Assembly (NCBI GenBank): GCA_002269645.1 | Contig: NIVC01001848.1 | Coordinates: 124,001 to 188,000 of the forward strand | Direction of reading: 5' to 3' | DNA: 64,000 nucleotides | Source of the DNA: Macrostomum lignano | Taxonomy: Eukaryota | Translations under genes and position numbers: made by a program | The notes under the pieces: model-generated | Databases searched by the model: none | What the model saw: only the letters and a program-made list of their open reading frames with translations | Told to the model about the DNA's origin: nothing | Part shown: one piece after another, positions 301 to 62,361 of the stretch | Layout of the letters: each line of letters begins with the position of its first letter | Numbering within the stretch: position 1 is the stretch's first letter

Positions 301-1598
301 GGAGAGGCAGAGGTAGAGGCCAGAGTTTGCCTGACATTCTGCGTAGCAGCCAACAATATCAATGCTTGCTTGAAATCCTAATTTTACATAAATGTACTCT
401 ATTTTGTTTAACTCTATCCTAATGATTAACAAACTTTTGTTCAAGTTTGACCTCAAATTTTAAAATACATGCAAAAATAATTCTGGGAAATGGAGTTCCC
501 CGGGTTCAAAATCCGCGGGTTTCAATAGCTTGTATGCCATTAAAAAGTAAAATTAATACGTTGCGTCGCGCTGCATAGATATTTCCTTGTCGCGTTGCAC
601 CATACTGCACCATGTCGCGCCACCGTGCGACTTCCCGCGCCGCCACACGACCTCCAGCGCTGCGTTGCGCCGCTGCGCGCCGCACTGCGCCGCAACCTGG
701 CTGTTGTATATTGCAAAGGCATGCAATGCATAGGGATAGTTTGTGGACAGGGTTTCTAGAAACTTCTACAGCAGGACTTGTTTATGCATAGTTCCAGAAG
801 TTTCCTCTCCCGGTCTTTCTAGAACTTTCCTTCCTCGTGTGCATAAATATATAAGCTGCCCTCCTATTGGCCAAGCCCTGTTTGCTGCTACTGGGCACAC
901 GGATAATTATCTATCTTGCTTCTGCATTTGTTAATTCAAGAACAGAATACTGGCTACAGCCGCGCGTGCTGCGCCGATCTGAAATTTAAAAAATGTGCTG
1001 GATGCATGTCCATGAAAATGTCACTTTTTCCATTAGGGAGAAATAGGAATTAACTTTAACTTTTAACTTTTCAGAAGTTAAATTTTTGGCAAAAGTTAAA
1101 TATTTAACTAGTTACAGTTAATTTTTTTTCAAGCAATTGAATTAACTTTTTAACTTTTAACAAGTTAAAAAAATTGATTAATGTGCCTAGCACTGTCAAA
1201 AACAAGAAAGAAGAAATCATTACATTATTGAATGTCAAAAATGGCTTTTTATTTGAGTTCCTCCTTTTGTTGCAGACTTGTAGCCTCAATCGCTCAATGG
1301 CATGTGTAGGCCTACAATTTTTTGTGTTCATAGAATGAACTAGGCCTATAGTTATTCATAGGCTATACATAGTTCTATTGTCCATTGTCTACTACTAGGC
1401 CTAGGCCTATTGGACTTCTTGAACTTTAGTTAGGCCTACGACTATATAAATTATTTGTAATTTGATAGGATCATAAGTTGTCTATAGCCTATAGGCTATA
1501 TAGGTTTTTGATAGTATTGATTTCAAATTAAAGCTTCATTTTTTGTAGACTAAGGCCAACCAATAGGACATGGAGAATAGAAGTTTTAGGATAGAAAC

Positions 1599-1768
1599 AT
1601 GCATGTGCAACCTTGGGAATCACTCAGCCATTTCTATTGGCAACACATAGATGTAAGTTGCTATTGGCTGATAGTAGTCACATGATTACTCTTCCATCCA
1701 ATAGCGACTTACATGTGTGTGTTGCCAATAGAAACAGCCAGGTGAATCCCTTGGTTGTGCCCAAGCAT
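1599..1768. repeat. ~170-bp imperfect foldback (long inverted repeat)
   Basis: Arm ttctattggcaacacatagatgtaagttgctattgg (1632-1667) pairs with ccaatagcgacttacatgtgtgtgttgccaatagaa (1698-1733). Pairing extends outward to caacc/ggttg (1608/1757). Confidence 0.85.
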
Positions 1769-2676
1769 AGATAGAAAGAGAATCTTAATGGGGAGGTTAG
1801 CAATAGCATAAAATTTTTTTGAATATTAGATAGATAAACTCTAAGACCAGGGTCAGGGAGGTCTAAAGGGTGCCACCAAATTCATTAATATCTAATTTAT
1901 CAACTCTATTGATGAATTCAATTTATCTTACTATGCATTGTTGACAAATTTGGTTGCTTGACTAAATACTGTTAACTAATCTTAAAAATTAAAAGACAAA
2001 GCCTATTAAGATAAGAATATGCATATAAGATAACAAAGGCAAATGTTTTTTAATTAGGCCTAGGCCTAATATATATTTATTAATTATTTTTACACGCTGT
2101 TAAAACCTCAGAATTTTAAACTTTTTGAATTTTAATCCTAGAACTATAGGATTTATCTTTTTAATATCAAAATTTTCTCTTATTTATATCAACATCTATA
2201 ATCATTTAAAATAAATAATGTGATCTTATTAGGATAAAGTAGCATACTAAAATAAACATTAATAAAATAGCAATTATAAACAATTATAAATTATAAAATT
2301 ATGGTTGCTTAATTTTTTCAATGTAATGTATTTTATCAAAGGCCATTATTTTAAAGTCAATGTGTATTTTGCATATGAAATAAATTATATAAAATTAAAA
2401 AGGCCTAGGGCCTATATAATCTAAAGAGCTAATCAGAGACAGATTAAGTATATTGCATAAAAGTTAATTGTTAATTAATAGACTCCCTCTCTTTTTTCTC
2501 CCTCCTTTCTTTTCCTATTCTCTTCCTCTCCTTTCTTTCTTCTCCCAATTTTTTATTTTTTGCATTTTTTATTTTGCAAATTACTTTGGCCGGCAGCCAT
2601 TTCACCTGTCTAGTTTGGATGGGTCAGATAAGTATTGGGCATGTATGCATTAAGGACAGATATGATATTAGAAACC

Positions 2677-2954
2677 CCTATTGCAGCGCATGGCTTAAGT
2701 ACGCCAGACGCCTACACAACCTGCGCCACGCTGTGAAATGACTTACCTATGAAAGAAACTCTAAAGCAAAATTAACGCAGTTTTGGGTAAACGGCAGGAG
2801 TAACTATGACTGTCTTATCAAGCCTAAATGCCTCGGCATCTAATTAGTACCGCGCCGCGCCGTACTAATCGCCAAGCGCCGTACGCGCCGCGCCGCGCCG
2901 TATTAGATCCGCGCCGGACGCCGTCCGCCAAAATGCCCATGCGCTGCAATCAGG
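2677..2954. mobile_element. Non-autonomous TIR DNA element (MITE-like) with 9-bp TSD, carrying a 28S rRNA fragment
   Basis: Left end cct-attgcagcgcatggc matches the reverse complement of the right end, cctgattgcagcgcatgggc. Direct repeat ttagaaacc at 2668-2676 and 2955-2963. The element is a GC-rich island in AT-rich DNA. Confidence 0.8.
2785..2855 (+). pseudogene. 28S (LSU) rRNA fragment, helix 69-71 region; non-functional copy
   Basis: gggtaaacggcaggagtaactatgactgtctta-tcaagcct-aaatgcctcggcatctaattagt versus recalled eukaryotic consensus gggtaaacggcgggagtaactatgactctctta-aggtagcc-aaatgcctcgtcatctaattagt: 53/56 identical outside the central 8 nt. No flanking rDNA is present. Confidence 0.85.
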
Positions 2955-3742
2955 TTAGAAACCATTTAAAAAATAAAGATAGATAAAAAGCCTGTACTAG
3001 AAAATGAAAGAAAATAAAGTTGTCAATGCACAATTTGTTTAGAAAAAAACTATTTAATTGCTTTATAAAAGTTTTTCTTTCACATTACTAAGTATATCAA
3101 GTATATTAAAAAAATATAATAGATTTATAGCAAACAATAAATTAAATTGTTTCAAAAGCAGATGACCATTTTTAATTCTATGACTACTATGATTTTATTT
3201 TTCTGATATCCCAGTTGTAACAGATTTGTCTCCCAATTTTTCAACATTTAAAATTTGAGAATTAGTTCTATTTTAGCTTTATCCTTAATGCATGCAAGAG
3301 AAGAGATCTTTATTGTTCTTTTCTTAAATTTCAATGCAAAGGCTAAAAGTAATGAGTAGTAATAGTGAGTTGAAAGTGTCCACTTCTTGTGGATATACCC
3401 AAGAAATATTTTCTTGTTTAAAGTAATTTAAAATACAAAACTACAGTATAAGAAAAACTTGAAACTAACAAACTGGTATTTCTATAGTTGTAGCCACTGG
3501 AGCAGAATCTGCTTTAGATTTTAGCATAGTTACCATAGCAATTACCTATTGCCAATAGTTAAAATTAGAACACAAATATTAGTTAGACTTATTGTGACTA
3601 TGAGACCATTTAACTCTACACAAGAAAAAAACTAGACATTTACAAGAATCATATAAATATTGGCTTTTATGCATGCTTGTATATTATCTGTATAAGCAAT
3701 TAGTTCGATTACTAGCTTAATAAATAAAACAACCAACTAGCC

Positions 3743-6580
3743 ATGAGCGGCAGTGCAGCAGTGGCAGCCTCAGCCGAGCCAGAGAAGCCAGCAGAGCCCA
3801 AGGAGGCCGAAGCCGATTCTGGAGCTGTTCGTAAGCCGAACGATTCTCGATTTCATCAGCAGAGGCTGCCCGCATGGCAACCGTTGCTAACGGCCAAGCC
3901 CGCATTCTGTCTGTTCTTCATCATCGGTATTGTGTTCGTACCATTGGGCGCGTTTTTGTTGACAACTTCTCAATCGGTTGAAGAGATCAAAACTGACTAT
4001 ACAAATTGCAAGAATGGATCCAGCTTCTGTCTGGCACTGGTAAGATATTAGCATTTGTCTGTTAGGTTCCCTGAGGCTGTAAGGCAGAGTTTTCTTTGTT
4101 GGAGGCGCCATTTCACTTGATTAGGCGCCATTTCAATTGACTAGGTGCCATTTCACTTGATTAGGCGCCATTTCACTTTGACTAGGCGCTATTTCAATTG
4201 ATTAGGCGCCATTTTATTTCACTAGGCGCCATTTTATTTGACTAGGCGCCATTTCACTTGACTAGGCGCCATTTCATTTCACCAGGCGCCATTTCATTTG
4301 ACTAGGCGCCATTTCACTTGACTAATCGCTCACGAAACAAAATATCACGATGATCTTCATTGTTTTATGCTTTCAAAGCTTGTGTCATTGAATGGTCTCT
4401 GCTGGTACAACCTAGCTGGTGTCCTTAGTTGACCTCTGTTGTTGCAACATGCTTATGTCCTGAAATGACCTTTTCCGGTATTAAAGCTGCTAATTGCCCA
4501 CTGATTTCATTCCAGGTGAGCACGCCAGAATACTACGCCAACTTCCAGAGCTGCCAGTGCATGGTGGACATCAAACTGCCCAACAACCTGACTGGCCAGG
4601 TGTACGCCTATTACGCCCTGACTAATTTCTATCAGAATCATCGGCGCTACGTTAAAAGCCGGGACGACGGCCAACTGCAGGGCACAAAGATGGACAACCT
4701 GCTGGATGACTGCAATCCCTATAGGCAGAGCCCGTCTGGCCAGTGGTACGCTCCCTGCGGCGCCATCGCTAATAGCCTATTCAACGACACGTTCCAGCTG
4801 TTCTACAACCGGCCAGACGGCTCCGGCCGGGTAGCCGTGCCCTGGACCTCGACCGGCATAGCCTGGGACAGCGATCGGGCCCGCAAATTTGCTCGCATCA
4901 GTTCGTGGAATAATACCGTTAAGCCTGTGAATTGGCCCAAGTCGGCTAAGGAGAGGAATGCCGACGCTTATCAGGTTAGGGTTGGCAACTTGACGAGGAG
5001 ATCGGGTCCTTAAATGACCTTTCATATCAGTGACGCTTGTTTTGAAGTTTGTATGATTTTCGAGCCGGTGTCCTTGAATGACCTCTACAGGTGCAACTTG
5101 CACTGTGTCCTTGAATGACCTCTACAGGTGCAACTTGCACTGTGTCCTTGAATGACCTTTACAGGTGCAACTTGCACTGTGTCCTTGAATGACCTTTACA
5201 GGTGCAACTTGCACTGTGTCCTTGAATGACCTTTACAGGTGCAACTTGCACTGTGTCCTTGAATGACCTTTACAGGTGCAACTTTCACTGTGTCCTTGAA
5301 TGACCTTTACAGGTGCAACTTGCACTGTGTCCTTGAATGACCTTTACAGGTGCAGCTTTCACTGTGTCCTTGAATGACCTTTACAGGTGCAACTTGCACT
5401 GTGTCCTTGAATGACCTTTACAGGTGCAGCTTTCACTGTGTCCTTGAATGACCTTTACAGGTGCAGCTTTCACTGTGTCCTTGAATGACCTTTACAGGTG
5501 CAACTTTCACTGTGTCCTTGAATGACCTTTACAGGTGCAACTTGCACTGTGTCCTTGAATGACCTTTACAGGTGCAACTTGCACTGTGTCCTTGAATGAC
5601 CTTTACAGGTGCAACTTGCACTGTGTCCTTGAATGACCTTTACAGGTGCAACTTGCACTGTGTCCTTGAATAGCCTTTACTTTACCAGGCACTACTTCAA
5701 CTTATGCGGTGTCTTTGAAAAATGTTTTTAAAGTTCAATTTAGGCTTCTGTCATTAAAAGACCAATTTCTGGATCTACTTAAAATGGTTACAGGTATTCC
5801 CGCCTTCCTGATGGACCTACATACACGGTTGTAGATTTTACTGGTGTCCCTAATAATAATAATTGATTACACCTGCCCTATTGGGCCAGATGTGCAACCG
5901 ACAGCTCAGCCGCAGCTATTGCGCGGCGAATCTGAAGGCTGCGTACGGCTGTTCAGTCCAAGGACTGGGGTCTCGCCGCACACACCCTCAATTGCCCCAG
6001 CTAATGCTGGCACCCATTTTACAACTGGGTGAACTGGAGCAATGCAGAGTTAAGTGTCTTGCTCAAGGACACAAATTGTTCCAGTGGGATCGGGAATCGA
6101 ACCCCCGACGCTCTAACCACTAGGCTACATCCCATGGTGTCCCTAGATGACCTAAATTACCTGCTTAGTGTCTTTAAATGGTCTCTTTTCCACTGCAACA
6201 TAGGCAAATCGATTGTCCTCAAATAAGCTTATGTTTCGGCTTCCTTAACCCGTGCCCTTTAGGGTGACGAAGAGCTAATAGTCTGGATGCGAACCGCCGC
6301 CTTGCCATCGTTTCGCAAGCTGCACCGCATCATACAGCACGATTCGGCTGCAACGAATCTGTTCAAAGACGGCCTGCCTGCCGGCAACTATTCGCTAGTG
6401 GTTAACTACGCCTACCCTGTCAGCTCGTTTGCCGGCACCAAGTCTTTCATATTGACAACTTCAACTTGGCTGGGCGGCCGGAATCCCGCTCTCGGCATTA
6501 TCTACCTGGTTGTTGGCTCTCTGCACGTTATTCTTGGCATCATCTTTGTGGGAGTTTTTCTCTACTCGAGAAAGAAGTGA
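3743..6580 (+). CDS. TMEM30A: CDC50/LEM3-family P4-ATPase flippase beta subunit (cell cycle control protein 50A-like), 3 exons, ~357 aa
   Basis: Exons 3743-4039, 4516-4974 and 6263-6580, all GT-AG, phase 0. Family motifs include QQRLPAWQP, YYALTNFYQNHRRYVKSRDD.QL, PCGAIANSLFNDTF, EELIVWMRTAALPSFRKL and WLGGRNPALGI. Two predicted TM segments lie near the termini. Confidence 0.95.
4103..4325. repeat. 20-bp minisatellite (aggcgccatttcacttgact), ~11 copies, CDC50 intron 1
   Basis: Tandem units read directly from the sequence. Confidence 0.92.
5068..5680. repeat. 37-bp minisatellite (gtgtccttgaatgacctttacaggtgcaacttgcact), 16 copies plus a partial, CDC50 intron 2
   Basis: Unit starts at 5068 and 5660 are 16 x 37 bp apart. 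Confidence 0.95.
5853..6134 (-). mobile_element. tRNA-head SINE with CORE (MIR-like) domain, in CDC50 intron 2
   Basis: Minus strand: A box tagcctagtgg and B box ggttcgattcc, then gtgtccttgagcaagacacttaac...gtaaaatgggtg resembling the MIR/CORE core, then an (ATT)n tail at 5851-5863. An 11-bp TSD tggtgtcccta lies at 5842-5852 and 6135-6145. Confidence 0.85.
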
Positions 6581-6670: not shown

Positions 6671-8222
6671 TCCAAGAATCCCTCCTCTTGGTTCTCTAAG
6701 AATCGAATCGCCCCTCCTAACTCTCCAAGAATCCCTCCTCTTGGTTCTCTAAGAATCGAATCGCCCCTCCTAACTCTCCAAGAATCCCTCCTCTTGGTTC
6801 TCTAAGAATCGAATCGCCCCTCCTAACTCTCCAAGAATCCCTCCTCTTACATGTAGTCCTCCAAGAATCGCCCCTCTTAACTCTCCAAGAATCGCCCCTC
6901 TTAGCTCTCTAAGAATCGCCCCTCTTAGCTCTCCAAGAATCACCCCTCTTAGCTCTCCAAGAATCGCCCCTCTTAGCTCTCCAAGAATCGCCCCTCTTAA
7001 CTCTCCAAGAATCTCCCCTCTTAGTTCTCCAAGAATCGCCCCTCTTAACTCTCCAAGAATCGTTTATCTTAGCTCTCCAAGAATCGCCCCTCTTAGCTCT
7101 CCAAGAATCGCCCCTCTTAACTCTCCAAGAATCTCCCCTCTTAGTTCTCCAAGAATCACCCCTCTTAGCTCTCCAAGAATCGCCCCTCTTAACTCTCCAA
7201 GAATCGCCCCTCTTAACTCTCCAAGAATCGCCCCTCTTAACTCTCCAAGAATCGCCCCTCCTAACTCTCCAAGAATCGCCCCTCTTAACTCTCCAAGAAT
7301 TGCCCCTCTTAACTCTCCAAGAATCGCCCCTCTTAACTCTCCAAGAATCGCCCCTCTTAACTCTCCAAGAATCTCCCCTCTTAGTTCTCCAAGAATCACC
7401 CCTCTTAGCTCTCCAAGAATCACCCCTCTTAGCTCTCCAAGAATCGCCCCTCTTAACTCTCCAAGAATCTTCCCTCTTAGTTCTCCAAGAATCGCCCCTC
7501 TTAACTCTCCAAGAATCGTTTATCTTAGCTCTCCAAGAATCGCCCCTCTTAGCTCTCCAAGAATCGCCCCTCTTAACTCTCCAAGAATCGCCCCTCTTAA
7601 CTCTCCAAGAATCGCCCCTCTTAGTTCTCCAAGAATCACCCCTCTTAGCTCTCCAAGAATCACCCCTCTTAGCTCTCCAAGAATCGCCCCTCTTAACTCT
7701 CCAAGAATCGCCCCTCTTAACTCTCCAAGAATCGCCCCTCTTAGCTCTCCAAGAATCGCCCCTCTTAACTCTCCAAGAATCGCCCCTCTTAGCTCTCCAA
7801 GAATCGCCAATCTTAACTCTCCAAGAATCGCCCCTCTTAACTCTCCAAGAATCGTTTATCTTAGCTCTCCAAGAATCGTTTATCTTAGCTCTCCAAGAAT
7901 CGCCCCTCTTAGCTCTCCAAGAATCGCCAATCTTAACTCTCCAAGAATCGCCCCTCTTAACTCTCCAAGAATCGTTTATCTTAGCTCTCCAAGAATCGTT
8001 CATCTTAGCTCTCCAAGAATCGCCCCTCTTAGCTCTCCAAGAATCGCCCCTCTTAGCTCTCCAAGAATCGCCCCTCTTAGCTCTCCAAGAATCGTCCATC
8101 CTAGCTCTCCAAGAATCGCCCCTCTTAGCTCTCCAAGAATCGCCCCTCTTAGCTCTCCAAGAATCTCCACTCTTAGCTCTCAAAGAATCGTCCATCCTAG
8201 CTCTCCAAGAATCTTCTCTCTT
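6671..8222. repeat. 24-bp minisatellite (ctctccaagaatcgcccctcttag), ~60 copies, just 3' of the CDC50 stop
   Basis: 8-aa periodic ORFs on both strands (LQESPLLA / WRAKRGDS). The first ~170 bp has a ~53-bp derived unit three times. Confidence 0.95.
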
Positions 8223-9526
8223 AGTTGGCCTTTATAAGTAATGCACGATCGTGTTTTGTTTAGATGATTATGCTTGTGCGTACTATAAGCATGGTTTATA
8301 AGTTATAATTTAACCCAAAATCAATTATTACGGTGCTTGATAAGGATACTCTATCTAGCCAATGGACTGAATTATTAATTTGAATGCTGTTATGCGTAAT
8401 TGCAACCCAGGCCTCTAGTGGCTGAAATCGGCATGGATTAGGTAATGATAAATATATATCTGTCAAATTGGTAATGATAGTCAGTCTGCTTTCGCATTTT
8501 ATTGGCATCTTACAATGACTGAATTTGCACTATACTAAATCAGGCGTAAATTCCATTGAAAACGGTTACCGTGACCAGAAGCGCTAAAGAATCATTACAA
8601 ACAACTCACTAGCGACTCTGTGACGCTTCTCAGTCTGGGTACCGTTTTCATCGGGAATGCCGAATGTTTATCCATGCATCGCCTACTCTCTGCTCCGTAA
8701 TGCTTTATTGTTATGTAGCCATTCTGCCGCTTTTGAGTACGCCATGAACAGAAATCATCAATAGCGCCACATTATTGCTATAGTAGCTACTTATAGTAGC
8801 AAGCAGTATTTGCTAAAAGGCAAAAAAGAGGAGGGAATGCAATTCAATGTCTGTTTTACTACACTGTACTTTTATATTGTTTATCTCATTGCACGCATCT
8901 GTTAGAGACAGGATTTAGAATCAACTCCGTCAAGGCTTAAGATAATGTCTGGACAACAGCAGCACAGTACACTGCCGCAGTGATTGTTAGTGTGTCGGTT
9001 TATAAATATTGACAATTACATGTTAGTTCGCTTTGTTTGATCACGTAGTAGATACTATATTAGACATTAGCTTGCTAGTGCTGTGATTATATGTACCCCT
9101 ATCTATAGGTGTACTACTATAAGTAGAGGGACGCTGCACTCGAAAATACTGACTAAGCTGCCCGTATTTCAGGATGAAATAGGATAAACGAGCCCCAGAA
9201 GTTGGTACCCTGCCAGTGTGACCCACCAGATTCCGGGGATTATTGACATTCGAGCGTGTTCAGCGCCGTAGTGACATGCTCTCACCTGTTTGCAAGCATT
9301 ACTTTTAACAACAAGCACAACTTCACGCTTAAAAAACTGCCATGCTCAAAATACCGAGATATGTTTTTCTAAACGGGTTGTGCAATTAGACAATTTGGTC
9401 GAGAGAATCAACGCATTTCAAAAAAACAATCGCAATTTACATAATTTGTGAGCATAGCGTCTCTTTACTTATTGTAGCTGTCCGTGCATCTGTACATGAA
9501 TGCGTTCTGTTCAGCACAGCCTGAAT

Positions 9527-10639: not shown

Positions 10640-11965
10640 GATTTGGCTGACAGCTGGCATTGAGCGGGGCGGGTTTTGAGTCAGACCAGATTGATTGGCT
10701 GACAGCTGAAATTGGGCAGAGTGGGTTGGTTTTGAGTCAGACCAGATTTGATTGGCTGACAGCTGAAATTGGGCAGAGTGGGTTGGTTTTGAGTCAGACC
10801 AGAATTGATTGGCTGACAGCTGAAATTGGGCAGAGTGGGTTGGTTTTGAGTCAGACCAGATTTGATTGGCTGACAGCTGAAATTGGGCAGAGTGGGTTGG
10901 TTTTGAGTCAGACCAGATTTGATTGGCTGACAGCTGGCTTGGGCAGAGTGGGTTGGTTTTGAGTCAGACCAGATTTGATTGGCTGACAGCTGGCTTGGGC
11001 AGAGTGGGTTGGTTTTGAGTCAGACCAGATTTGATTGGCTGACAGCTGAAATTGGGCAGAGTGGGTTGGTTTTGAGTCAGACCAGATTTGATTGGCTGAC
11101 AGCTGGCATTTGGCAGAGTGGGTTGGTTTTGAGTCAGACCAGATTTGATTGGCTGCCAGCTGGCTTTGGCAGAGTGGGTTGGTTTTGAGTCAGACCAGAT
11201 TTGATTGGCTGACAGCTGGCTTTGGCAGAGTGGGTTGGTTTTGAGTCAGACCAGATTTGATTGGCTGACAGCTGAAATTGGGCAGAGTGGGTTGGTTTTG
11301 AGTCAGACCAGAATTGATTGGCTGACAGCTGGAATTGGGCAGAGTGGGTTGGTTTTGAGTCAGACCAGATTTGATTGGCTGACAGCTGAAATTGGGCAGA
11401 GTGGGTTGGTTTTGAGTCAGACCAGATTTGATTGGCTGACAGCTGGCATTGGGCAGAGTGGGTTGGTTTTGAGTCAGACCAGATTTGATTGGCTGACAGC
11501 TGAAATTGGGCAGAGTGGGTTGGTTTTGAGTCAGACCAGAATTGATTGGCTGACAGCTGGAATTGGGCAGAGTGGGTTGGTTTTGAGTCAGACCAGATTT
11601 GATTGGCTGACAGCTGAAATTGGGCAGAGTGGGTTGGTTTTGAGTCAGACCAGATTTGATTGGCTGACAGCTGGCATTGGGCAGAGTGGGTTGGTTTTGA
11701 GTCAGACCAGATTTGATTGGCTGACAGCTGAAATTGGGCAGAGTGGGTTGGTTTTGAGTCAGACCAGATTTGATTGGCTGACAGCTGGCATTGGGCAGAG
11801 TGGGTTGGTTTTGAGTCGGACCAGATTTGATTGGCTGCCAGCTGGCTTTGGCAGAGTGGGTTGGTTTTGAGTCGGACCAGATTTGATTGGCTGACAGCTG
11901 GCATTGGGCAGAGTGGGTTGGTTTTGAGTCAGACCAGATTTGATTGGCTGACAGCTGGAATTGGA
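10640..11965. repeat. 57-bp minisatellite, ~23 copies
   Basis: Unit tgattggctgacagctgaaattgggcagagtgggttggttttgagtcagaccagatt. The ORF track shows 19-aa periodicity. Confidence 0.95.
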
Positions 11966-12536
11966 CAGATTTGATAGGCTTTCAGATTTCAACCAATCAG
12001 TATTTATAGTTGTCACTCATTTTTGTCGTCGTCGTTTTTCTTTTTTACTTTTGGAATTTAATTGTTTATTTTTGCCAAATTTAATTGAAAAAATGGCGCT
12101 AAAATTTGTACTCTGAATCGTACGAGTCTGTATCTATTTTTTAAGTCAGTTCAATTAAAAAATAATCTAAATCAACTTTTCAGGCACAAAGTGACCCTCA
12201 CGAACTTCTGATACCTTTCTGGCACGAGATTGGCTGGCGAAGAGTTTCCTAAAAAGAAAAAGTTCTGCACCCACTTTTGAATTTGTTTTAACTTGATCTG
12301 CTTATAATTTGAGAACTGATCTATTTTTTTATTGTCACACTGGAAAGGCCTACTTAATATTTTTTGCCACAAATGTTCCTATCTTGTGAATACAAGAATT
12401 TGAATACGGCAAATTTTTCTTTCTATATCCTACTCTCTTATTCCATTCTCTTTGTCTCTTTCGATTGTTTTTTAAAAGCTTCTCTGTGACATTGTGTGAG
12501 TGTAATGTTACTGTATTGTATGTCTACTCTGCACCA

Positions 12537-13005: not shown

Positions 13006-13556
13006 AATCTATGAATATAGAAGGCTTATTATCATAGATTTTTGCACATTCCTTACTGCACCGTATTTCAGCAGCTGTGTGTAACATTAGTTTGTGTGCA
13101 AACTACAACTTTACTTAACGGATAATAATAATAATACTTTTGTAATTAAATATTAAGAACAGTTATATTCCAGATAAGCTATAACTAAGTAATTATTATT
13201 ATCAATTTTATATTTCTTTATACCAGTAATATCTTTTGCGTTTTTTCAGTTGTTGTTTACCCGGCTGTGTCCGCTTCTATTACTCTCTGTTTTAGTATGA
13301 CAAAATGCCTATTTCTTATATACTGTTTCTAATGGTGGCGTTATGTCACAATCTTATGCCCATGTTAGTAATTATAGCATGGAATTAATTATTAATATAA
13401 CTGGCGATTGTAAAATTCATATTAATCCATTTTATTTGGCTGGCAAAAGCCTTTGTTGTTTTATCTATTTTTTTATTGAATCTTAGAATAGGAATTCGTT
13501 TTTATTAAATTATCTTATTCTGATTAACATAAACCTCATTAAGGTATTTTCTAATA

Positions 13557-14903
13557 ACCCAGTGTGTTACTGCTGATAGCCCAGTGTGTTACTGATAGCC
13601 TAGTGTGTTACTGCTGATAGCCCAGTGTGTTACTGATAGCCTAGTGTGTTACTGATAGCCCAGTGTGTTACTGATAGCCCAGTTTGTTACTCATAGCCCA
13701 GTGTGTTACTGATAGCCCAGTGTGTTACTGCTGATAGCCCAGTGTATTACTGATAGCCCAGTGTGTTACTGATAGCCTAGTGTGTTACTGATAGCCCAGT
13801 GTGTTACTGATAGCCCAGTGTGTTACTGATAGCCCAGTGTGTTACTGATAGCCCAGTGTGTTACTGATAGCCCAGTGTGTTACTGCTGATAGCCCAGTGT
13901 GTTACTGATAACCCAGTGTGTTACTGATAACCCAGTGTGTAACTGATAGCCCAGTGTGTTACTGCTGATAGCCCAGTGTATTACTGATAGCCCAGTGTGT
14001 TACTGATAGCCTAGTGTGTTACTGATAGCCCAGTGTGTTACTGATAGCCCAGTGTGTTACTGATAGCCCAGTGTTACTGATAGCCTAGTGTGTTACTGAT
14101 AGCCCAGTGTGTTACTGATAGCCCAGTGTGTTACTGATAGCCCAGTGTGTTACTGATAGCCTAGTGTGTTACTGATAGCCCAGTGTGTTACTGATAGCCC
14201 AGTGTGTTACTGATAGCCTTGTGTGTTACTGATAGCCCAGTGTGTTACTGATAGCCCAGTGTGTTACTGATAGCCCAGTGTGTTACTGATAGCCCAGTGT
14301 TACTGATAGCCCAGTGTGTTACTGATAGCCCAGTGTTACTGATAGCCCAGTGTGTTACTGATAGCCCAGTGTGTTACTGATAGCCCAGTGTTACTGATAG
14401 CCCAGTGTGTTACTGATAGCCCAGTGTGTTACTGATATCCCAGTGTGTTACTGATAGCCCAGTGTTACTGATAGCCCAGTGTGTTACTGATAGCCCAGTG
14501 TGTTACTGATAGCCCAGTGTGTTACTAATAGCCCAGTGTGTTACTGATAGCCCAGTGTGTTACTGATAGCCCAGTGTTACTGATAGCCCAGTGTGTTACT
14601 GATAGCCCAGTGTTACTGATAGCCCAGTTTGTTACTGATAGCCCAGTGTTACTGATAGCCCAGTGTGTTACTGATAGCCAGTGAGTTACTGATAGCCCAG
14701 TGTGTTACTGATAGCCCAGTGTGTTACTGATAGCCCAGTGTGTTACTGATAGCCAGTGAGTTACTGATAACCCAGTGTGTTACTGATAGCCCAGTGTGTT
14801 ACTGATAGCCAGTGAGTTACTGATAGCCCAGTGTGTTACTGATAGCCCAGTGTGTTACTGATAGCCCAGTGTGTTACTGATAGCCAGTGAGTTACTGATA
14901 GCC
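13557..14903. repeat. 19-bp minisatellite (ctgatagcccagtgtgtta), ~70 copies, upstream of UBAC2
   Basis: Tandem units with 17- and 22-bp indel variants. Confidence 0.95.
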
Positions 14904-22759: not shown

Positions 22760-24240
22760 GTGAGATTTTGGAACATAAGTCTAAAGGTGAGATTTAGTAG
22801 TCAAACTCTAAGGGATGAGATTTGCGTGCTGAAGTCTAAAGGTGAGATTTTGAAGTAAAACTCGGGTGAGATTTTGAAGCAGAACTCTAAGGGGTGAGAC
22901 TTTGAAGTAGAACTCTAAGGGGTGAGATTTTGAAGTAGAACTCTAAGGGGTGAGACTTTGAAGTAGAACTCTGAGGGTGAGAAATTTTGAAGCAAAACTC
23001 TAAGTTGTGAGACTTTGAAATCGAAGTTTGAGGGGTGAGTAGAACTCTCAAGGGTGAGATTTGATTACCAAACTCTAAGGAGTGAGATTTGATTACCAAA
23101 CTCTAAGGAGTGAGATTTGATTACCAAAGTCTAAGGGGTGAGATTTGATTACCAAACTCTAAGGAGTGAGATTTGATTACCAAACTCTAAGGAGTGAGAT
23201 TTGATTACCAAAGTCTAAGGGTTGAGATTTGATTACCAAACTCTAAGGAGTGAGATTTGATTACCAAACTCTAAGGAGTGAGATTTGATTACCAAACTCT
23301 AAGGGTTGAGATTTGATTACCAAACTCTAAGGAGTGAGATTTGATTACCAAACTCTAAGGAGTGAGATTTGATTACCAAACTCTAAGGAGTGAGATTTGA
23401 TTACCAAAGTCTAAGGGTTGAGATTTGATTACCAAACTCTAAGGAGTGAGATTTGATTACCAAACTCTAAGGAGTGAGATTTGATTACCAAACTCTAAGG
23501 AGTGAGATATGATTACCAAACTCTAAGGAGTGAGATTTGATTACCAAACTCTAAGGAGTGAGATTTGATTACCAAACTCTAAGGAGTGAGATTTGATTAC
23601 CAAACTCTAAGGAGTGAGATTTGATTACCAAACTCTAAGGAGTGAGATTTGATTACCAAACTCTAAGGAGTGAGATTTGATTACCAAACTCTAAGGAGTG
23701 AGATTTGATTACCAAACTCTAAGGAGTGAGATTTGATTACCAAACTCTAAGGAGTGAGATTTGATTACCAAAGTCTAAGGGGTGAGATTTGATTACCAAA
23801 GTCTAAGGAGTGAGATTTGATTACCAAACTCTAAGGAGTGAGATTTGATTACCAAACTCTAAGGGGTGAGATTTGATTACCAAAGTCTAAGGAGTGAGAT
23901 TTGATTACCAAACTCTAAGGAGTGAGATTTGATTACCAAAGTCTAAGGGGTGAGATTTGATTACCAAAGTCTAAGGAGTGAGATTTGATTACCAAACTCT
24001 AAGGAGTGAGATTTGATTACCAAACTCTAAGGGGTGAGATTTGATTACCAAAGTCTAAGGAGTGAGATTTGATTACCAAAGTCTAAGGGGTGAGATTTGA
24101 TTACCAAACTCTAAGGGGTGAGATTTGATTACCAAAGTCTAAGGAGTGAGATTTGATTACCAAAGTCTAAGGGGTGAGATTTGATTACCAAAGTCTAAGG
24201 AGTGAGATTTGATTACCAAAGTCTAAGGGGTGAGATTTAA
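22760..24240. repeat. 28-bp minisatellite (gagtgagatttgattaccaaactctaag), ~43 homogeneous copies plus a degenerate left flank
   Basis: Period of 28 confirmed (23281 to 23309). Confidence 0.95.
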
Positions 24241-24896
24241 AATCGCTAAAAATTTCCAGTAAAATTATTCCGCTGTGCATCGAAGCATAGCGAGCCGAGT
24301 TCTCGGAGCACAGAGGCTTGCCACCTCATCTTCCCGTTGCCAGGCCGCAGTTTCCATTCTGAGCTAATAATTTCAACATTCCTTTAAATCAACTTTGAGC
24401 TGAGATTTTCCCAGTCTCCCCTCGGAATGTTCAATCGAATTGCAGGCTCAGTCAGTTTTTCAAGTTTAAGCCGTAAGCCCAGCAGGCAACCGCTAATCCT
24501 GCCCAAGCCTGCTAGGGGGAGATAATCCCCGCCCGAGGAGGGAGAAGTGCATGGGGAATGTCCACCGGTTCAGCCGAGCAATCCAATTCCCAGGCTCAGA
24601 CTTTGGAACATAGAAATTAATTAGTTGCCAGGTGCGAAGCAGTTTCTAATCGTCATCGAAATGAGCTTGTAAAGCGAGGCTGCACCTGTTCCCTTTATGC
24701 GGCTAAATATGAACTCCCGGGACTGAAGGGGGGCGCGAAAATTGGAGAAAATTTTGGGATCGGGTTCGAGATCGAGGAGAGATTGGGAAAATTCACCGCA
24801 TCAGTCTGCCATCGGCTTCGGCTTTAGTTCATGGCCTGAGATGAGGCTGGTGATAAACAGGACAGGTGCAAGACTGGAAAGAAGGGGAACGGGGAA

Positions 24897-27800
24897 GACA
24901 GACAGAGATCAGACAGGGGCAGACAGAAAGACAGACAGAAATCAGACAGGGGCAGACAGAAAGACAGACAGAGATCAGACAGGGGCAGACAGAAAGCCAG
25001 ACAGAAATCAGACAGGGGCAGACAGAAAGACAGACAGAGATCAGACAGGGGCAGACAGAAAGACAGACAGAGATCAGACAGGGGCAGACTGACAGACAGA
25101 CAGAGAACAGACAGGGGCAGACAGACAGACAGACAGATATAAGACAGGGGCGGACAGAAAGACAGACAGAGATCAGACAGGGGCAGACAGAAAGACAGAC
25201 AGAGATCAGACAGGGGCAGACAGAAAGACAGACAGAGATCAGACAGGGGCAGACAGAAAGACAGACAGAGATCAGACAGGGGCAGACAGAAAGACAGACA
25301 GAGATCAGACAGGGGCAGACAGACAGACAGAGACAGGCAGGGGCAGACAGGCATGGGGCAGACAGGCATGGGGCAGACAGGCAGGGGCAGACAGGCATGG
25401 GGCAGACAGGCATGGGGCAGACAGGCAGGGGCAGACAGGCATGGGGCAGACAGGCATGGGGCAGACAGGCATGAGGCAGACAGGCAGGGGCAGACAGGCA
25501 GGGGCAGACAGGCAGGGGCAGACAGGCAGGGGGCAGACAGGCAGGGGCAGACAGGCAGGGGCAGACAGGCAGGGGGCAGACAGGCAGGGGGCAGACAGGC
25601 AGGGGCAGACAGGCAGGGGCAGACAGGCAGGAGCAGACAGGCATGGGGCAGACAGGCAGGGGGCTGACAGGCATGGGGCAGACAGGCATGGGGCTGACAG
25701 GCATGGGGCAGACAGGCATGGGGCAGACAGGCAAGGGATACAGGCAGGGGCAGACAGGCAGGGGGCTGACAGGCATGGGGCAGACAGGCAGGGGGCTGAC
25801 AGGCATGGGGCAGACAGGCAGGGGCTGACAGGCAGGGGGCAGACAGGCAAGGGATACAGGCAGGGGCAGACAGGCAGGGGCAGACAGGCAAGGGATACAG
25901 GCATGGGGCAGACAGGCAGGGGGCAGACAGGCAGGGGATACAGGCATGGGGCAGACAGGCAGGGGGCTGACAGGCATGGGGCAGACAGGCAGGGGGCTGA
26001 CAGGCAGGGGCAGACAGGCAGGGGATACAGGCATGGGGCAGACAGGCAGGGGGCAGACAGGCAAGGGATACAGGCAGGGGCAGACAGGCAGGGGGCTGAC
26101 AGGCATGGGGCAGACAGGCAGGGGGCTGACAGGCAGGGGGCTGACAGGCAGGGGATACAGGCATGGGGCAGACAGGCAGGGGGCAGACAGGCAGGGGATA
26201 CAGGCATGGGGCAGACAGGCAGGGGGCTGACAGGCATGGGGCAGACAGGCAGGGGGCTGACAGGCAGGGGGCAGACAGGCATGGGGCAGACAGGCAGGGG
26301 GCTGACAGGCAGGGGGCTGACAGGCAGGGGATACAGGCATGGGGCAGACAGGCAGGGGGCTGACAGGCATGGGGCAGACAGGCAGGGGGCTGACAGGCAG
26401 GGGGCAGACAGGCATGGGGCAGACAGGCAAGGGATACAGGCAGGGGCAGACAGGCAGGGGGCTGACAGGCATGGGGCAGACAGGCAGGGGGCTGACAGGC
26501 AGGGGCAGACAGGCAGGGGATACAGGCATGGGGCAGACAGGCAGGGGGCAGACAGGCAGGGGATACAGGCATGGGGCAGACAGGCATGGGGCAGACAGGC
26601 AAGGGATACAGGCAGGGGCAGACAGGAAGGGGCTGACAGGCATGGGGCAGACAGGCAGGGGGCTGACAGGCAGGGGCAGACAGGCAGGGGATACAGGCAT
26701 GGGGCAGACAGGCAGGGGGCAGACAGGCAGGGGATACAGGCAGGGGCAGACAGGCAGGGGGCTGACAGGCAGGGGATACAGGCATGGGGCAGACAGGCAG
26801 GGGGCTGACAGGCATGGGATACAGGCAGGAGCAGACAGGCAGGGGGCTGACAGGCATGGGGCAGACAGGCAGGGGGCTGACAGGCAGGGGGCTGACAGGC
26901 AGGGGATACAGGCATGGGGCAGACAGGCAGGGGGCTGACAGGCATGGGGCAGACAGGCAGGGGGCTGACAGGCAGGGGGCAGACAGGCATGGTGCAGACA
27001 GGCAAAAGATACAGGCAGGGGCAGACAGGCAGGGGGCTGACAGGCATGGGGCAGACAGGCAGGGGGCTGACAGGCAGGGGCAGACAGGCAGGGGATACAG
27101 GCATGGGGCAGACAGGCAGGGGGCTGACAGGCATGGGGCAGACAGGCAGGGGGCTGACAGGCAGGGGGCAGACAGGCATGGGGCAGACAGGCAGGGGGCT
27201 GACAGGCAGGGGGCTGACAGGCAGGGGATACAGGCATGGGGCAGACAGGCAGGGGGCTGACAGGCATGGGGCAGACAGGCAGGGGGCTGACAGGCAGGGG
27301 GCAGACAGGCATGGGGCAGACAGGCAAGGGATACAGGCAGGGGCAGACAGGCAGGGGGCTGACAGGCATGGGGCAGACAGGCAGGGGGCTGACAGGCAGG
27401 GGCAGACAGGCAGGGGATACAGGCATGGGGCAGACAGGCAGGGGGCTGACAGGCAGGGGATACAGGCATGGGGCAGACAGGCAGGGGGCTGACAGGCATG
27501 GGGCAGACAGGCAGGGGGCTGAGAGGCAGGGGGCAGACAGGCAGGGGGCTGACAGGCAGGGGCAGACAGGCAGGGGATACAGGCATGGGGCAGACAGGCA
27601 GGGGGCAGACAGGCAGGGGGCAGACAGGCAAGGGATACAGGCAGGGGCAGACAGGCAGGGGGCTGACAGGCATGGGGCAGACAGGCAGGGGCTGACAGGC
27701 ATGAGGCAGACAGGCAGGGGCTGACAGGCAGGGGGCTGACAGGCAGGGGATACAGGCATGGGGCAGACAGGCAGGGGGCTGACAGGCATGGGATACAGGC

Positions 27801-30800
27801 AGGAGCAGACAGGCAGGGGGCTGACAGGCAGGGGGCTGACAGGCAGGGGATACAGGCATGGGGCAAACAGGCAGGGGGCTGACAGGCATGGGGCAGACAG
27901 GCAGGGGGCTGACAGGCAGGGGGCAGACAGGCATGGGGCAGACAGGCAAGGGATACAGGCAGGGGCAGACAGGCAGGGGCTGACAGGCATGGGGCAGACA
28001 GGCAGGGGGCTGACAGGCATGGGGCAGACAGGCAGGGGATACAGGCATGGGGCAGACGGGCAGGGGGCAGACAGGCAGGGGATACAGGCATGGGGCAGAC
28101 AGGCAGGGGGCTGACAGGCATGGGGCAGACAGGCAGGGGGCTGACAGGCAGGGGGCAGACAGGCATGGGGCAGACAGGCATGGGGCAGACAGGCAGGGGG
28201 CTGACAGGCAGGGGGCTGACAGGCAGGGGATACAGGCATGGGGCAGACAGGCAGGGGGCTGACAGGCATGGGGCAGACAGGCAGGGGCTGACAGGCAGGG
28301 GGCAGACAGGCATGGGGCAGACAGGCAAGGGATACAGGCAGGGGCAGACAGGCAGGGGCTGACAGGCATGGGGCAGACAGGCAGGGGGCTGACAGGCATG
28401 GGGCAGACAGGCATGGGGCAGACAGGCAGGGGGCTGACAGGCAGGGGGCTGACAGGCAGGGGATACAGGCATGGGGCAGACAGGCAGGGGGCTGACAGGC
28501 ATGGGGCAGACAGGCAGGGGGCAGACAGGCATGGGGCAGACAGGCAAGGGATACAGGCAGGGGCAGAAAGGCAGGGGGCTGACAGGCATGGGGCAGACAG
28601 GCAGGGGGCAGACAGGCAGGGGGCTGACAGGCAGGGGGCTGACAGGCAGGGGATACAGGCATGGGGCAGACAGGCAGGGGGCTGACAGGCAGGGGCAGAC
28701 AGGCAGGGGATACAGGCATGAGGCAGACAGGCAGGGGGCAGACAGGCAGGGGATACAGGCATGGGGCAGACAGGCATGGGGCAGACAGGCAAGGGATACA
28801 GGCAGGGGCAGACAGGCAGGGGGCTGACAGGCATGGGGCAGACAGGCAGGGGGCTGACAGGCAGGGGCAGACAGGCAGGGGATACAGGCATGGGGCAGAC
28901 AGGCAGGGGCAGACAGGCAGGGGATACAGGCATGGGGCAGACAGGCAGGGGCTGACAGGCATGGGGCAGACAGGCAGGGGGCTGACAGGCAGGGGGCAGA
29001 CAGGCAGGGGGCTGACAGGCAGGGGGCTGACAGGCAGGGGATACATGCATGGGGCAGACAGGCAGGGGGCTGACAGGCATGGGGCAGACAGGCAGGGGGC
29101 TGACAGGCAGGGGGCAGACAGGCATGGGGCAGACAGGCAAGGGATACAGGCAGGGGCAGACAGGCAGGGGCTGACAGGCAGGGGCAGACAGGCAGGGGAT
29201 ACAGGCATGGGGCTGACAGGCAGGGGATACAGGCATGGGGCAGACAGGCAGGGGCTGACAGGCATGGGGCAGACAGGCATGGGGCAGACAGGCAGGGGGC
29301 TGACAGGCAGGGGGCTGACAGGCAGGGGATACAGGCATGGGGCAGACAGGCAGGGGCTGACAGGCATGGGGCAGACAGGCAGGGGGCTGACAGGCAGGGG
29401 GCAGAAAGGCATGGGGCAGACAGGCAAGGGATACAGGCAGGGGCAGACAGGCAGGGGCTGACAGGCATGGGGCAGACAGGCAGGGGGCTGACAGGCAGGG
29501 CAGACAGGCAGGGGATACAGGCATGGGGCAGACAGGCAGGGGGCAGACAGGCAGGGGATACAGGCATGGGGCAGACAGGCAGGGGCAGAAAGGCAAGGGA
29601 TACAGGCAGGGGCAGACAGGCAGGGGGCTGACAGGCATGGGGCAGACAGGCAGGGGGCTGACAGGCAGGGGCAGACAGGCAGGGGATACAGGCATGGGGC
29701 AGACAGGCAGGGGGCAGACAGGCAGGGGCTGACAGGCAGGGGGCAGACAGGCAGGGGCTGACAGGCAGGGGGCAGACAGGCATGGGGCAGACAGGCAAGG
29801 GATACAGGCAGGGGCAGACAGGCAGGGGGCTGACAGGCATGGGGCAGACAGGCAGTGGGCTGACAGGCAGGGGCAGACAGGCAGGGGATACAGGCATGGG
29901 GCAGACAGGCAGGGGGCTGACAGGCATGGGGCAGACAGGCAGGGGGCAGACAGGCATGGGGCAGACAGGCAGGGGCTGACAGGCAGGGGCTGACAGGCAG
30001 GGGATACAGGCATGGGGCAGACAGGCAGGGGGCTGACAGGCATGGGGCAGACAGGCAGGGGGCTGACAGGCAGGGGCAGACAGGCATGGGGCAGACAGGC
30101 AAGGGATACAGGCAGGGGCAGACAGGCAGGGGGCTGACAGGCATGGGGCAGACAGGCAGGGGCTGACAGGCAGGGGATACAGGCATGGGGCAGAAGGCAG
30201 GGGGCAGACAGGCAGGGGCAGACAGGCAGGGGGCTGACAGGCAGGGGGCAGACAGGCATGGGGCAGACAGGCAGGGGCTGACAGGCAGGGGCTGACAGGC
30301 AGGGATACAGGCATGGGGCAGACAGGCAGGGGGCTGACAGGCATGGGGCAGACAGGCAGGGGCTGACAGGCAGGGGCAGACAGGCATGGGGCTGACAGGC
30401 AGGGGCTGACAGGCAGGGGATACAGGCATGGGGCAGACAGGCAGGGGGCTGACAGGCATGGGATACAGGCAGGAGCAGACAGGCAGGGGGCTGACAGGCA
30501 TGGGGCAGACAGGCAGGGGGCTGACAGGCAGGGGCTGACAGGCAGGGGATACAGGCATGGGGCAAACAGGCAGGGGCTGACAGGCATGGGGCAGACAGGC
30601 AGGGGCTGACAGGCAGGGGGCAGACAGGCATGGGGCAGACAGGCAAGGGATACAGGCAGGGGCAGACAGGCATGGGGTACACAGGCATGGGGCAGACAGG
30701 CAGGGGGCTGACAGGCAGGGGGCTGACAGGCAGGGGATACAGGCATGGGGCAGACAGGCAGGGGGCTGACAGGCATGGGGCAGACAGGCATGGGGCAGAC

Positions 30801-33800
30801 AGGCAGGGGATACAGGCATGGGGCAGACAGGCAGGGGGCTGACAGGCATGGGGCAGACAGGCAGGGGGCTGACAGGCAGGGGGCAGACAGGCATGGGGCA
30901 GACAGGCAAGGGATACAGGCAGGGGCAGACAGGCAGGGGGCTGACAGGCATGGGGCAGACAGGCAGGGGGCAGACAGGCAGGGGGCTGACAGGCAGGGGG
31001 CTGACAGGCAGGGGATACAGGCATGGGGCAGACAGGCAGGGGGCTGACAGGCAGGGGACACAGGCATGGGGCAGACAGGCATGGGGCAGACAGGCAAGGG
31101 ATACAGGCAGGGGCAGACAGGCAGGGGGCTGACAGGCATGGGGCAGACAGGCAGGGGCTGACAGGCAGGGGCAGACAGGCAGGGGATACAGGCATGGGGC
31201 AGACAGGCAGGGGCAGACAGGCAGGGGATACAGGCATGGGGCAGACAGGCAGGGGGCTGACAGGCATGGGCAGACAGGCAGGGGGCTGACAGGCAGGGGG
31301 CAGACAGGCATGGGGCAGACAGGCAAGGGATACAGGCAGGGGCAGACAGGCAGGGGGCTGACAGGCAGGGGCAGACAGGCATGGGGCAGACAGGCAGGGG
31401 CTGACAGGCAGGGGATACAGGCATGGGGCAGACAGGCAGGGGCTGACAGGCATGGGATACAGGCAGGAGCAGACAGGCAGGGGGCTGACAGGCATGGGCA
31501 GACAGGCAGGGGCTGACAGGCAGGAGGCTGGCAGGCAGGGGATACAGGCATGGGGCAAACAGGCAGGGGGCTGACAGGCATGGGGCAGACAGGCAGGATG
31601 CTGACAGGCAGGGGGCAGACAGGCATGGGGCAGACAGGCAAGGGATACAGGCAGGGGCAGACAGGCAGGGGATACAGGCATGGGGCTGACAGGCAGGGGA
31701 TACAGGCATGGGGCAGACAGGCAGGGGGGCTGACAGGCATGGGGCAGACAGGCAGGGGGCTGACAGGCAGGGGGCAGACAGGCATGGGGCAGACAGGCAA
31801 GGGATACAGGCAGGGGCAGACAGGCAGGGGGCTGACAGGCATGGGGCAGACAGGCAGGGGCTGACAGGCATGGGGCAGACAGGCAGGGGGCTGACAGGCA
31901 GGGGATACAGGCATGGGGCAGACAGGCAGGGGGCTGACAGGCATGGGATACAGGCAGGTGCAGACAGGCAGGGGGCTGACAGGCATGGGGCAGACAGGCA
32001 GGGGCTGACAGGCAGGAGGCTGGCAGGCAGGGATACAGGCATGGGGCAAACAGGCAGGGGGCTGACAGGCATGGGGCAGACAGGCAGGGGGCTGACAGGC
32101 AGGGGGCAGACAGGCATGGGGCAGACAGGCAGGGGATACAGGCATGGGGCAGACAGGCAGGGGGCTGACAGGCATGGGGCAGACAGGCATGGGGCAGACA
32201 GGCAGGGGATACAGGCATGGGGCAGACAGGCAGGGGGCTGACAGGCATGGGCAGACAGGCAGGGGGCTGACAGGCAGGGGCAGACAGGCATGGGGCAGAC
32301 AGGCAAGGGATACAGGCAGGGGCAGACAGGCAGGGGGCTGACAGGCATGGGGCAGACAGGCAGGGGCAGACAGGCAGGGGGCTGACAGGCAGGGGGCTGA
32401 CAGGCAGGGGATACAGGCATGGGGCAGACAGGCAGGGGGCTGACAGGCAGGGGACACAGGCATGGGGCAGACAGGCATGGGGCAGACAGGCAAGGGATAC
32501 AGGCAGGGGCAGACAGGCAGGGGCTGACAGGCATGGGGCAGACAGGCAGGGGGCTGACAGGCAGGGGCAGACAGGCAGGGGATACAGGCATGGGGCAGAC
32601 AGGCAGGGGCAGACAGGCAGGGGATACAGGCATGGGGCAGACAGGCAGGGGGCTGACAGGCATGGGGCAGACAGGCAGGGGGCTGACAGGCAGGGGCAGA
32701 CAGGCATGGGGCAGACAGGCAAGGGATACAGGCAGGGGCAGACAGGCAGGGGGCTGACAGGCAGGGGCAGACAGGCATGGGGCAGACAGGCAGGGGCTGA
32801 CAGGCAGGGGATACAGGCATGGGGCAGACAGGCAGGGGGCTGACAGGCATGGGATACAGGCAGGAGCAGACAGGCAGGGGGCTGACAGGCATGGGGCAGA
32901 CAGGCAGGGGGCTGACAGGCAGGAGGCTGGCAGGCAGGGGATACAGGCATGGGGCAAACAGGCAGGGGGCTGACAGGCATGGGGCAGACAGGCAGGATGC
33001 TGACAGGCAGGGGGCAGACAGGCATGGGGCAGACAGGCAAGGGATACAGGCAGGGGCAGACAGGCAGGGGATACAGGCATGGGGCTGACAGGCAGGGGAT
33101 ACAGGCATGGGGCAGACAGGCAGGGGGCTGACAGGCATGGGGCAGACAGGCAGGGGGCTGACAGGCAGGGGCAGACAGGCATGGGGCAGACAGGCAAGGG
33201 ATACAGGCAGGGGCAGACAGGCAGGGGGCTGACAGGCATGGGGCAGACAGGCAGGGGGCTGACAGGCATGGGGCAGACAGGCAGGGGGCTGACAGGCAGG
33301 GGATACAGGCATGGGGCAGACAGGCAGGGGCTGACAGGCATGGGATACAGGCAGGTGCAGACAGGCAGGGGGCTGACAGGCATGGGGCAGACAGGCAGGG
33401 GGCTGACAGGCAGGAGGCTGGCAGGCAGGGGATACAGGCATGGGGCAAACAGGCAGGGGGCTGACAGGCATGGGGCAGACAGGCAGGGGGCTGACAGGCA
33501 GGGGCAGACAGGCATGGGGCAGACAGGCAAGGGATACAGGCAGGGGCAGACAGGCAGGGGCTGACAGGCATGGGGCAGACAGGCAGGGGGCTGACAGGCA
33601 TGGGGCAGACAGGCAGGGGGCTGACAGGCAGGGGCAGACAGGCAAGGGATACAGGCAGGGGCAGACAGGCAGGGGCAGACAGGCAAGGGATACAGGCATG
33701 GGGCAGACAGGCAAGGGATTCAGGCAGGGGCAGACAGGCAAGGGATACAGGCAGGGGCAGACAGGCAAGGGATACAGGTAGGGGCAGACAGGCAAGGGAT

Positions 33801-45450: not shown

Positions 45451-46339
45451 AAAAACTTTACATTTTCTTGAGAAACAGGCAAATTTCTTAAAGAATAAAC
45501 CTGAAAAATACTTTCGTAGCAAGAATTCCGGAAAGTACACGGTTCATTGCTTGTTGTCGAATTTTTCCTGGTGTGTCTGTTTTGCTAAGCCTCTCTGACA
45601 CTCACCTTTACTTGAGTCGTTGCTACCAGCATTGAAGTCATGTGCCTACCGTGACAACAGGATTCAGAAAGCCTCACAAGCCAGCTCCTCCTCCTTGTAT
45701 CGACCGCCACAGCTGCAGCTGCTATGAGCCAAGGACCCTCATCTTAACTGACAGACTTGTTCTCCGTCACATCGACCTGCTGAGACGAAGAAGAATGAGG
45801 AAGGCTCTTAGCCCAGGTTGGGTTGCCAATTTTGGATCCCAATTGTCAAGTGGCTCCTGGCACACCCCGCCTGTCTTCGTGACTGCAGCGTCTTGCGTTC
45901 TCATTTTTCAGCCTCATCGCGTCCGCAGGGAATCGTGTTTTTTGTCTCAGCTGGCCGGAACACAATTTATTCATTTTTCTTTTTTTATCCACTGTTCCCC
46001 TCGAAGGGGTGAGCCGATCAATCAGTCTAAAACAGGTTTTTGCGTGTTTATTATCAGATATAAAAGGTATATGGACGTCAGTATTTTTTTTTAAATTGAG
46101 AAGCTTAATTATTTTTAACAAATTCACGGCTGATAAAAGCCTGAAATGCTGATTGACGCGATATGACGAATCTGCAGCTAAACCCCGGAGACCATGCTGG
46201 TTGTGCGTTTGTCGCTTATGACTATCGTCTGTTTCTTTGAAAATCTTCTATTGCTGGGCGATAGGCCTCCCTCCCATGAGGTTTGTGAGATTCGTTTTTG
46301 ATAGACAGAAAGGAGACTTTGTTACTAGAGAGTTTAACT

Positions 46340-61225: not shown

Positions 61226-62361
<1,136 letters not shown>

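Follow-up and report, generated by a model that had tools for sequence, protein, structure and literature searches.

A short site in 28S rDNA is a documented target of both endonucleases and transposons: I-PpoI recognizes CTCTCTTAAGGTAGC there (PMC3597653, PMC2602781), and Pokey and R2 are among the transposons that use the same site (PMC10946416). Pokey and mPok of Daphnia represent a family of DNA transposons with MITE derivatives, which is tied to this 28S hot-spot and has an rDNA-derived interior (PMC10946416). SINE28 is a dispersed element that contains a 28S-derived fragment, and a 2024 review of the interplay between rDNA and transposable elements (TEs) documents TEs with pieces of rDNA, giving SINE28 as the only one for 28S and Pokey as the one for IGS repeats (PMC10946416). 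Host fragments are also carried by non-autonomous MULEs and Pack-MULEs; MULEs generate target-site duplications (TSDs) of 8–11 bp, and the Curupira MULEs of flatworms are listed without terminal inverted repeats (TIRs) (PMC6446971). No family of MITEs or other TIR elements carrying the 28S core was found in the literature that we searched. The TIRs of MULEs often measure tens to hundreds of bp, which is typical and not universal. Merlin MITEs combine a TSD of 8–9 bp with short TIRs and with termini that start with GG, and hAT elements have an 8-bp TSD and a terminal YARNG motif.

The locus described here is a GC-rich block of 278 bp (2677–2954) set within AT-rich DNA, and it lies in a window (the whole stretch of DNA that was analysed) of 64 kb. 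We suggest that the block is probably a copy of a TIR transposon, non-autonomous and of class II, with an rDNA-derived passenger. MITE-like elements with a piece of a host gene inside them are already known; that this one is mobile as a family is something we infer from its anatomy alone, one copy being visible. Its parts are as follows.

2668–2676, no strand assigned: left TSD, TTAGAAACC, identical to 2955–2963
2677–2693, + strand: 5' TIR, CCTATTGCAGCGCATGG, with a perfect core at 2680–2693 (14/14 against 2937–2950; 17/18 when extended, with one indel)
2740–2784, + strand: weak upstream extension of the LSU similarity (model positions 2200–2245), of low identity in the Rfam alignment and absent from the BLAST alignment to the rDNA unit
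2785–2855, + strand: 28S-derived segment, H69–H71 region, decayed (BLAST, Rfam alignment and local alignment)
2810–2824, + strand: equivalent of the I-PpoI site and of the R2 and L1925 insertion point, CTGTCTTATCAAGCC against CTCTCTTAAGGTAGC, 8/15 identical
2843–2869, no strand assigned: internal palindrome, ATTAGTACCGCGC / GCGCCGTACTAAT, with 13-nt arms (2843–2855 and 2857–2869) that are 92% complementary and 1 nt apart
2850–2905, + strand: three subterminal direct repeats at a spacing of ~19 bp, each with GCGCCGTA (starting at 2857, 2876 and 2895), from repeat finding and a k-mer census
2937–2954, − strand: 3' TIR, CCATGCGCTGCAATCAGG, the 5' TIR in reverse complement
2955–2963, no strand assigned: right TSD, TTAGAAACC, identical to 2668–2676

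The case for a transposon starts at the borders of the insert, where the 9-bp direct repeat expected from the original prediction (8 bp under an alternative boundary) is present as two exact copies of TTAGAAACC. This 9-mer occurs twice in the 64-kb window, both times at the edges of the insert, against a chance expectation of 0.38. Directly inside the TSDs the insert starts with CCTATTGCAGCGCATGG and ends with CCATGCGCTGCAATCAGG, and the TIR core ATTGCAGCGCATGG (2680–2693) agrees with the reverse complement of 2937–2950 at 14/14 positions. When the TSD is read as 9 bp, CCT-ATTGCAGCGCATGG pairs with CCTGATTGCAGCGCATGG at 17/18 positions with one indel, and when it is read as 8 bp (TTAGAAAC) the TIRs agree at 16/18 positions without an indel; the TIRs that had been proposed are therefore real, and the length of ~19 bp first given for them was slightly overstated.

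Moreover, the entire 64-kb window was scanned for perfect inverted repeats with arms of 12 nt or more and a distance of 50–2000 bp between them. The scan returned 56, most inside satellites, and just one of the 56, that of the 278-bp insert, is bordered by a direct repeat of 7 nt or more located within 6 bp of the outer ends of the arms. The converse scan, proceeding from 8-bp direct repeats to inverted ends, again yielded this insert alone in the window, and in none of 60 Markov-1 simulated windows was an inverted repeat of 12 nt or longer combined with a direct repeat of 8 nt or longer.

Judged by its alignments, the segment at 2785–2855 is of 28S (H69–H71) origin. With Rfam no family reached the gathering score anywhere in the window; a permissive scan of 2550–3100 (551 nt) gave a single match, LSU_rRNA_eukarya (RF02543), at 2740–2855 on the + strand (26 bits, E 2.9e-4), which falls short of the gathering score of 50 and covers model positions 2200–2314 of 3401. 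When the insert was compared by BLAST with an actual eukaryotic rDNA unit (NZ_CP087163.1), the 71 nt of 2785–2855 aligned at 86% gapped identity (E 1e-15), and the remainder of the insert had no match in this 8-kb unit. Without gaps, 59 of the 71 positions (83%) are identical to 28S and 12 differ. Local alignment to a 28S consensus scored 50 for the insert, whereas the best of the other 400-nt pieces in the window reached 14 and the best of 500 shuffled inserts 17, so that the internal match of 64–71 nt to LSU helices 69–71 described earlier is confirmed as one of 71 nt, far above both the window and the shuffles.

The H69 stem of the segment contains two broken pairs that are not compensated, and therefore no rRNA constraint appears to act on it; H71 has one compensated pair and one broken. 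In the light of these alignments the segment is a decayed fragment and not a working RNA module, and a functional LSU rRNA gene (RF02543) was rejected on the score of 26 bits against 50, the partial coverage of the model and the broken H69 pairs.

The same 71-nt 28S stretch is matched by seven PLSDB plasmid records, NZ_CP087163.1 and NZ_CP050529.1 among them. NZ_CP087163.1 was deposited under the label of a bacterial plasmid, but its sequence is an entire eukaryotic rDNA unit (18S-5.8S-28S-5S, with the LSU at 1488–4868 according to Rfam) and presumably represents contamination or a mis-assigned contig. A bacterial, plasmid or phage origin of the insert was likewise rejected, the phage search being empty and the ‘plasmid’ matches being mislabelled eukaryotic rDNA.

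The original prediction regarded the segment as a captured R2/homing-endonuclease target, and here we depart from it, the usable form of that target being absent. Of the 12 positions that differ from 28S, seven lie in a single block of 8 nt, 2818–2825 (clustering P about 0.002, in a post hoc test), so that 7/8 nt of the block are changed; it is centred on the point where I-PpoI cleaves and where R2 and the L1925 intron insert, and outside it the segment is identical to 28S at 58/63 positions (92%). The 15 bases equivalent to the I-PpoI site retain 8 identities, the TTAA used by Pokey is lost, the GG^TA junction is replaced, and near-identity to 28S on either side of the core extends in runs of only about 30 nt. 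Because the core of the site is scrambled, the segment would not function as a target of R2, of I-PpoI-type endonucleases, of L1925 group I introns or of Pokey. As aligned to 28S, the insert keeps the surroundings of the rDNA-parasite target, and the target itself is destroyed.

With TIRs at its exact ends, a flanking TSD, a length of 278 bp and no transposase ORF, the insert has the anatomy of a MITE. Its longest ORFs are of 41–52 aa, leaving no coding capacity for a transposase. The 52-aa ORF (2828–2983) has no homologue among 1.84 billion representative proteins, and concatenated six-frame peptides of the non-rDNA parts had no match among the best 8000 candidates of 5.8 billion proteins, which is a weak negative. 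No tRNA-like part was found in the insert, and DNA and RNA folding of it gave only the TIR stem (z = −1.3 and −1.8).

Among the described systems, Pack-MULEs are approached in that the insert is non-coding with TIRs, has a TSD of 9 bp (or 8 bp) that lies inside the MULE range, and holds a host gene fragment; it differs from them in having TIRs of only 17–18 nt, rather than long ones, and in that its passenger is rRNA and not a fragment of a protein gene. Merlin would be similar in the length of the TSD and in its short TIRs, but the insert begins with CC where Merlin termini begin with GG. Pokey resembles the insert in its link to the same 28S hot-spot and in having rDNA-derived sequence inside; however, its duplications are TTAA and its rDNA-derived part consists of IGS repeats and not of a 28S core, whereas the insert has a 28S segment, a TSD of TTAGAAACC and a location outside the rDNA. 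A 28S fragment is also what the insert has in common with SINE28 and rRNA-derived SINEs, but SINEs are retroposons without TIRs.

Several assignments do not agree with the structure. An rRNA-derived SINE does not fit an insert with TIRs and a fixed-length TSD, with no A-rich or simple-repeat tail and with no tRNA/5S head; piggyBac/Pokey is contradicted by the TTAGAAACC flanks, with TTAA at neither junction; and hAT requires the 8-bp reading of the TSD and is at odds with the termini, which are CCCTA and CCTGA and not YARNG. The termini CC...GG fit none of the superfamily motifs compared. Taken together, the 9-bp TSD and the host-derived passenger would make the insert most like Mutator-type elements, with the short TIRs fitting less well, Merlin as a further candidate, and the length of a TSD alone giving no superfamily.

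The insert also stands out in composition, with a GC content of 54%, 30 CpGs and a CpG observed/expected ratio (o/e) of 1.49, against a GC content of about 30% and a CpG o/e of 0.08–0.49 in its flanks (0.49 upstream; 0.08, at 26% GC, in the DNA between the insert and the downstream gene). The perfect TSD and the CpG richness suggest that the insertion is recent, the CpG argument not being conclusive: because the exons in the window (CpG o/e 0.75–1.0) are without CpG depletion, CpG richness may mark the type of sequence and not its youth. Within the insert, the palindrome at 2843–2869 bridges the end of the 28S-like piece and the GC-rich right half, and the GCGCCGTA repeats are candidate transposase-binding motifs, such subterminal repeats being typical transposase-binding arrays in several superfamilies.

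A second short GC- and CpG-rich island in AT-rich DNA lies at 560–705 of the window (GC 58%, CpG o/e 1.55), and it is rich in GCGCCGC/GCGCTGC motifs, as is the right half of the insert. As a relative of the insert this island was rejected, since it scored 16 against a maximum of 15 for a composition-matched null and is without TIR or TSD.

Searches for relatives covered the window and external collections. In the 64-kb window there is no second copy (BLASTN with a word size of 7; TIR search with up to 2 mismatches), and no autonomous partner or further sequence with TIRs came to light there or in viral, metagenome and prokaryote collections. The TIR-pair pattern and the insert-specific 28S variant each had 0 matches in viral contigs and 0 in metagenome contigs, and both terminal 21–23-mers had 0 matches in viral contigs. 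A relaxed 11+11 TIR pair had 40 matches in 596 Gb of prokaryote genomes; these were discarded as chance matches in GC-rich bacteria, in which the repeat is not extended and the interiors are dissimilar. A search of full-text literature with the TIR sequence gave only unrelated primer matches.

Downstream of the insert lies a gene for CDC50/TMEM30, the beta subunit of P4-ATPases, which occupies 3743–6550 on the + strand and has at least three exons (about 3743–4090, 4507–4974 and 6263–6550, from TBLASTN with homologues). Its ATG is at 3743, placing the insert 780 bp upstream. The closest database relatives of the CDC50 exon are only about 52% identical, with trematodes leading, which points to a metazoan host and possibly to a flatworm.

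The window as a whole is unusually dense in tandem repeats, both minisatellites and microsatellites, with many units that are unrelated to one another (38 TRF rows), examples being the arrays at 4103–4324, 5068–5680, 6705–8224, 10672–11969, 13554–14903, 22866–24238, 46337–47837, 56498–57401 and 61226–62361, and the introns of the CDC50 gene, like those of a putative small-GTPase gene, are filled with such arrays. A 17-kb array at 25306–42427 consists of about 1200 copies of a 14–15-nt unit, CAGGCAGGGGCAGA, with a GC content of about 67% and very strong GC and AT skew; upstream of it, at 24895–25350, is a related 33-nt array. Exon-like ORFs at 53487–54577 on the + strand resemble a small Ras-superfamily GTPase by eye only (e.g. 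LILVANKADLVRNKEV) and are broken by an 18-nt minisatellite at 54043–54253. Additionally, a 416-aa ORF at 58563–59813 on the + strand (GC 67%) contains a GGMYLDLDTEP motif of the DXD type and resembles the glucosyltransferase domains of large clostridial toxins only faintly (E about 0.06). This ORF has no identical database entry, and a word-indexed protein search gave no homologues of it among the matches listed, where its Q/R-rich stretches possibly filled the candidates.

Considering other origins and roles for the 278-bp block, we regard it as improbable that it is no transposon at all and represents one-off filler DNA, containing rDNA, that was taken up when a double-strand break was repaired, or else the product of a local rearrangement, with the repeats coincidental. 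Such an origin would agree with the single copy and with the lack of relatives in the window and in viral and metagenome contigs, but the capture of filler would not make a perfect 14-nt TIR that lies 3–4 nt inside an exact 9-bp direct repeat, and nothing comparable in structure was met elsewhere in the window or in the 60 simulations. The location 780 bp upstream of the CDC50/TMEM30 ATG, where a 278-bp island with 30 CpGs (o/e 1.49) is followed by DNA with an o/e of 0.08, might be taken to indicate an exapted, promoter-proximal and CpG-rich regulatory module of that gene; many DNA transposons land near the 5' ends of genes, and we consider exaptation very unlikely given that the position also fits a neutral insertion. 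Scarcely credible is a function as a decoy, landing pad or source of small RNA against rDNA parasites, which the original prediction had entertained on the grounds that the segment derives from the 28S region used by R2, I-PpoI, L1925 introns and Pokey. For the present copy the scrambled recognition core argues against a decoy or landing pad (8/15 of the I-PpoI bases, TTAA lost and GG^TA replaced, with near-identity remaining in runs of ~30 nt), and there is no sign of multiple copies, one being visible, or of insertions into the segment.

The concentration of changes at the parasite site invites an explanation of its own. It is conceivable, if unlikely, that the block at 2818–2825 is a scar of repair or excision at the R2/I-PpoI/L1925 point that was carried along with mobilized rDNA, in which case the insert would go back to a DNA transposon living in or targeting the 28S hot-spot, or to an rDNA unit cut there, and not to random capture followed by uniform decay. 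That 7/12 differences lie in 8 nt exactly over the point of cleavage and insertion (P about 0.002), with the rest 92% identical, speaks for such a scar, as does the documentation of this 28S site as an endonuclease and transposon target (PMC2602781, PMC3597653, PMC10946416); it is opposed by the fact that the test is post hoc and concerns one block in one copy, and by the finding of neither a net change in length nor a remnant of the 8–9-bp duplication that is usual for an excision footprint of the hAT or MULE type. Quite improbable is the wider proposal that the 28S cargo of a mobile family preserves the trace of a hit at the universal rDNA-parasite site, either because the donor rDNA was cut at the I-PpoI/R2 point and imprecisely repaired before capture, or because only copies with a scrambled core survived active 28S-targeting parasites.

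Returning to the interpretation that we favour, a non-autonomous TIR transposon with an rDNA-derived passenger, we suggest that a transposase encoded elsewhere would bind the CCT(G)ATTGCAGCGCATGG termini, and perhaps the subterminal GCGCCGTA repeats as well, and would cut the target with a 9-bp stagger, so that the element is mobilized in trans by cut-and-paste. The insertion into AT-rich DNA upstream of the CDC50/TMEM30 gene would have been fairly recent. The 28S passenger may have come from rDNA into an ancestral element, one conceivable route being template switching while a gap was repaired, which has been proposed for transduplication of the Pack-MULE type; free of rRNA constraint, the passenger may later have decayed.

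Finally, taken as a single copy, the insert looks like any ordinary MITE that has landed near a gene, except for its unusual passenger, and the loss of the universal rDNA-parasite target within one confined block is an intriguing detail that can be assessed only across genomic copies. In annotation, copies of this kind can be mistaken for rDNA fragments or for off-target sites of rDNA-directed nucleases. If a family is present in the host genome, it would illustrate clearly how a TIR transposon disperses sequence from the most conserved part of 28S rDNA; and if the cargo of that family does record hits at the parasite site, its members would form a scattered fossil record of the conflict in which rDNA is engaged with its site-specific parasites.
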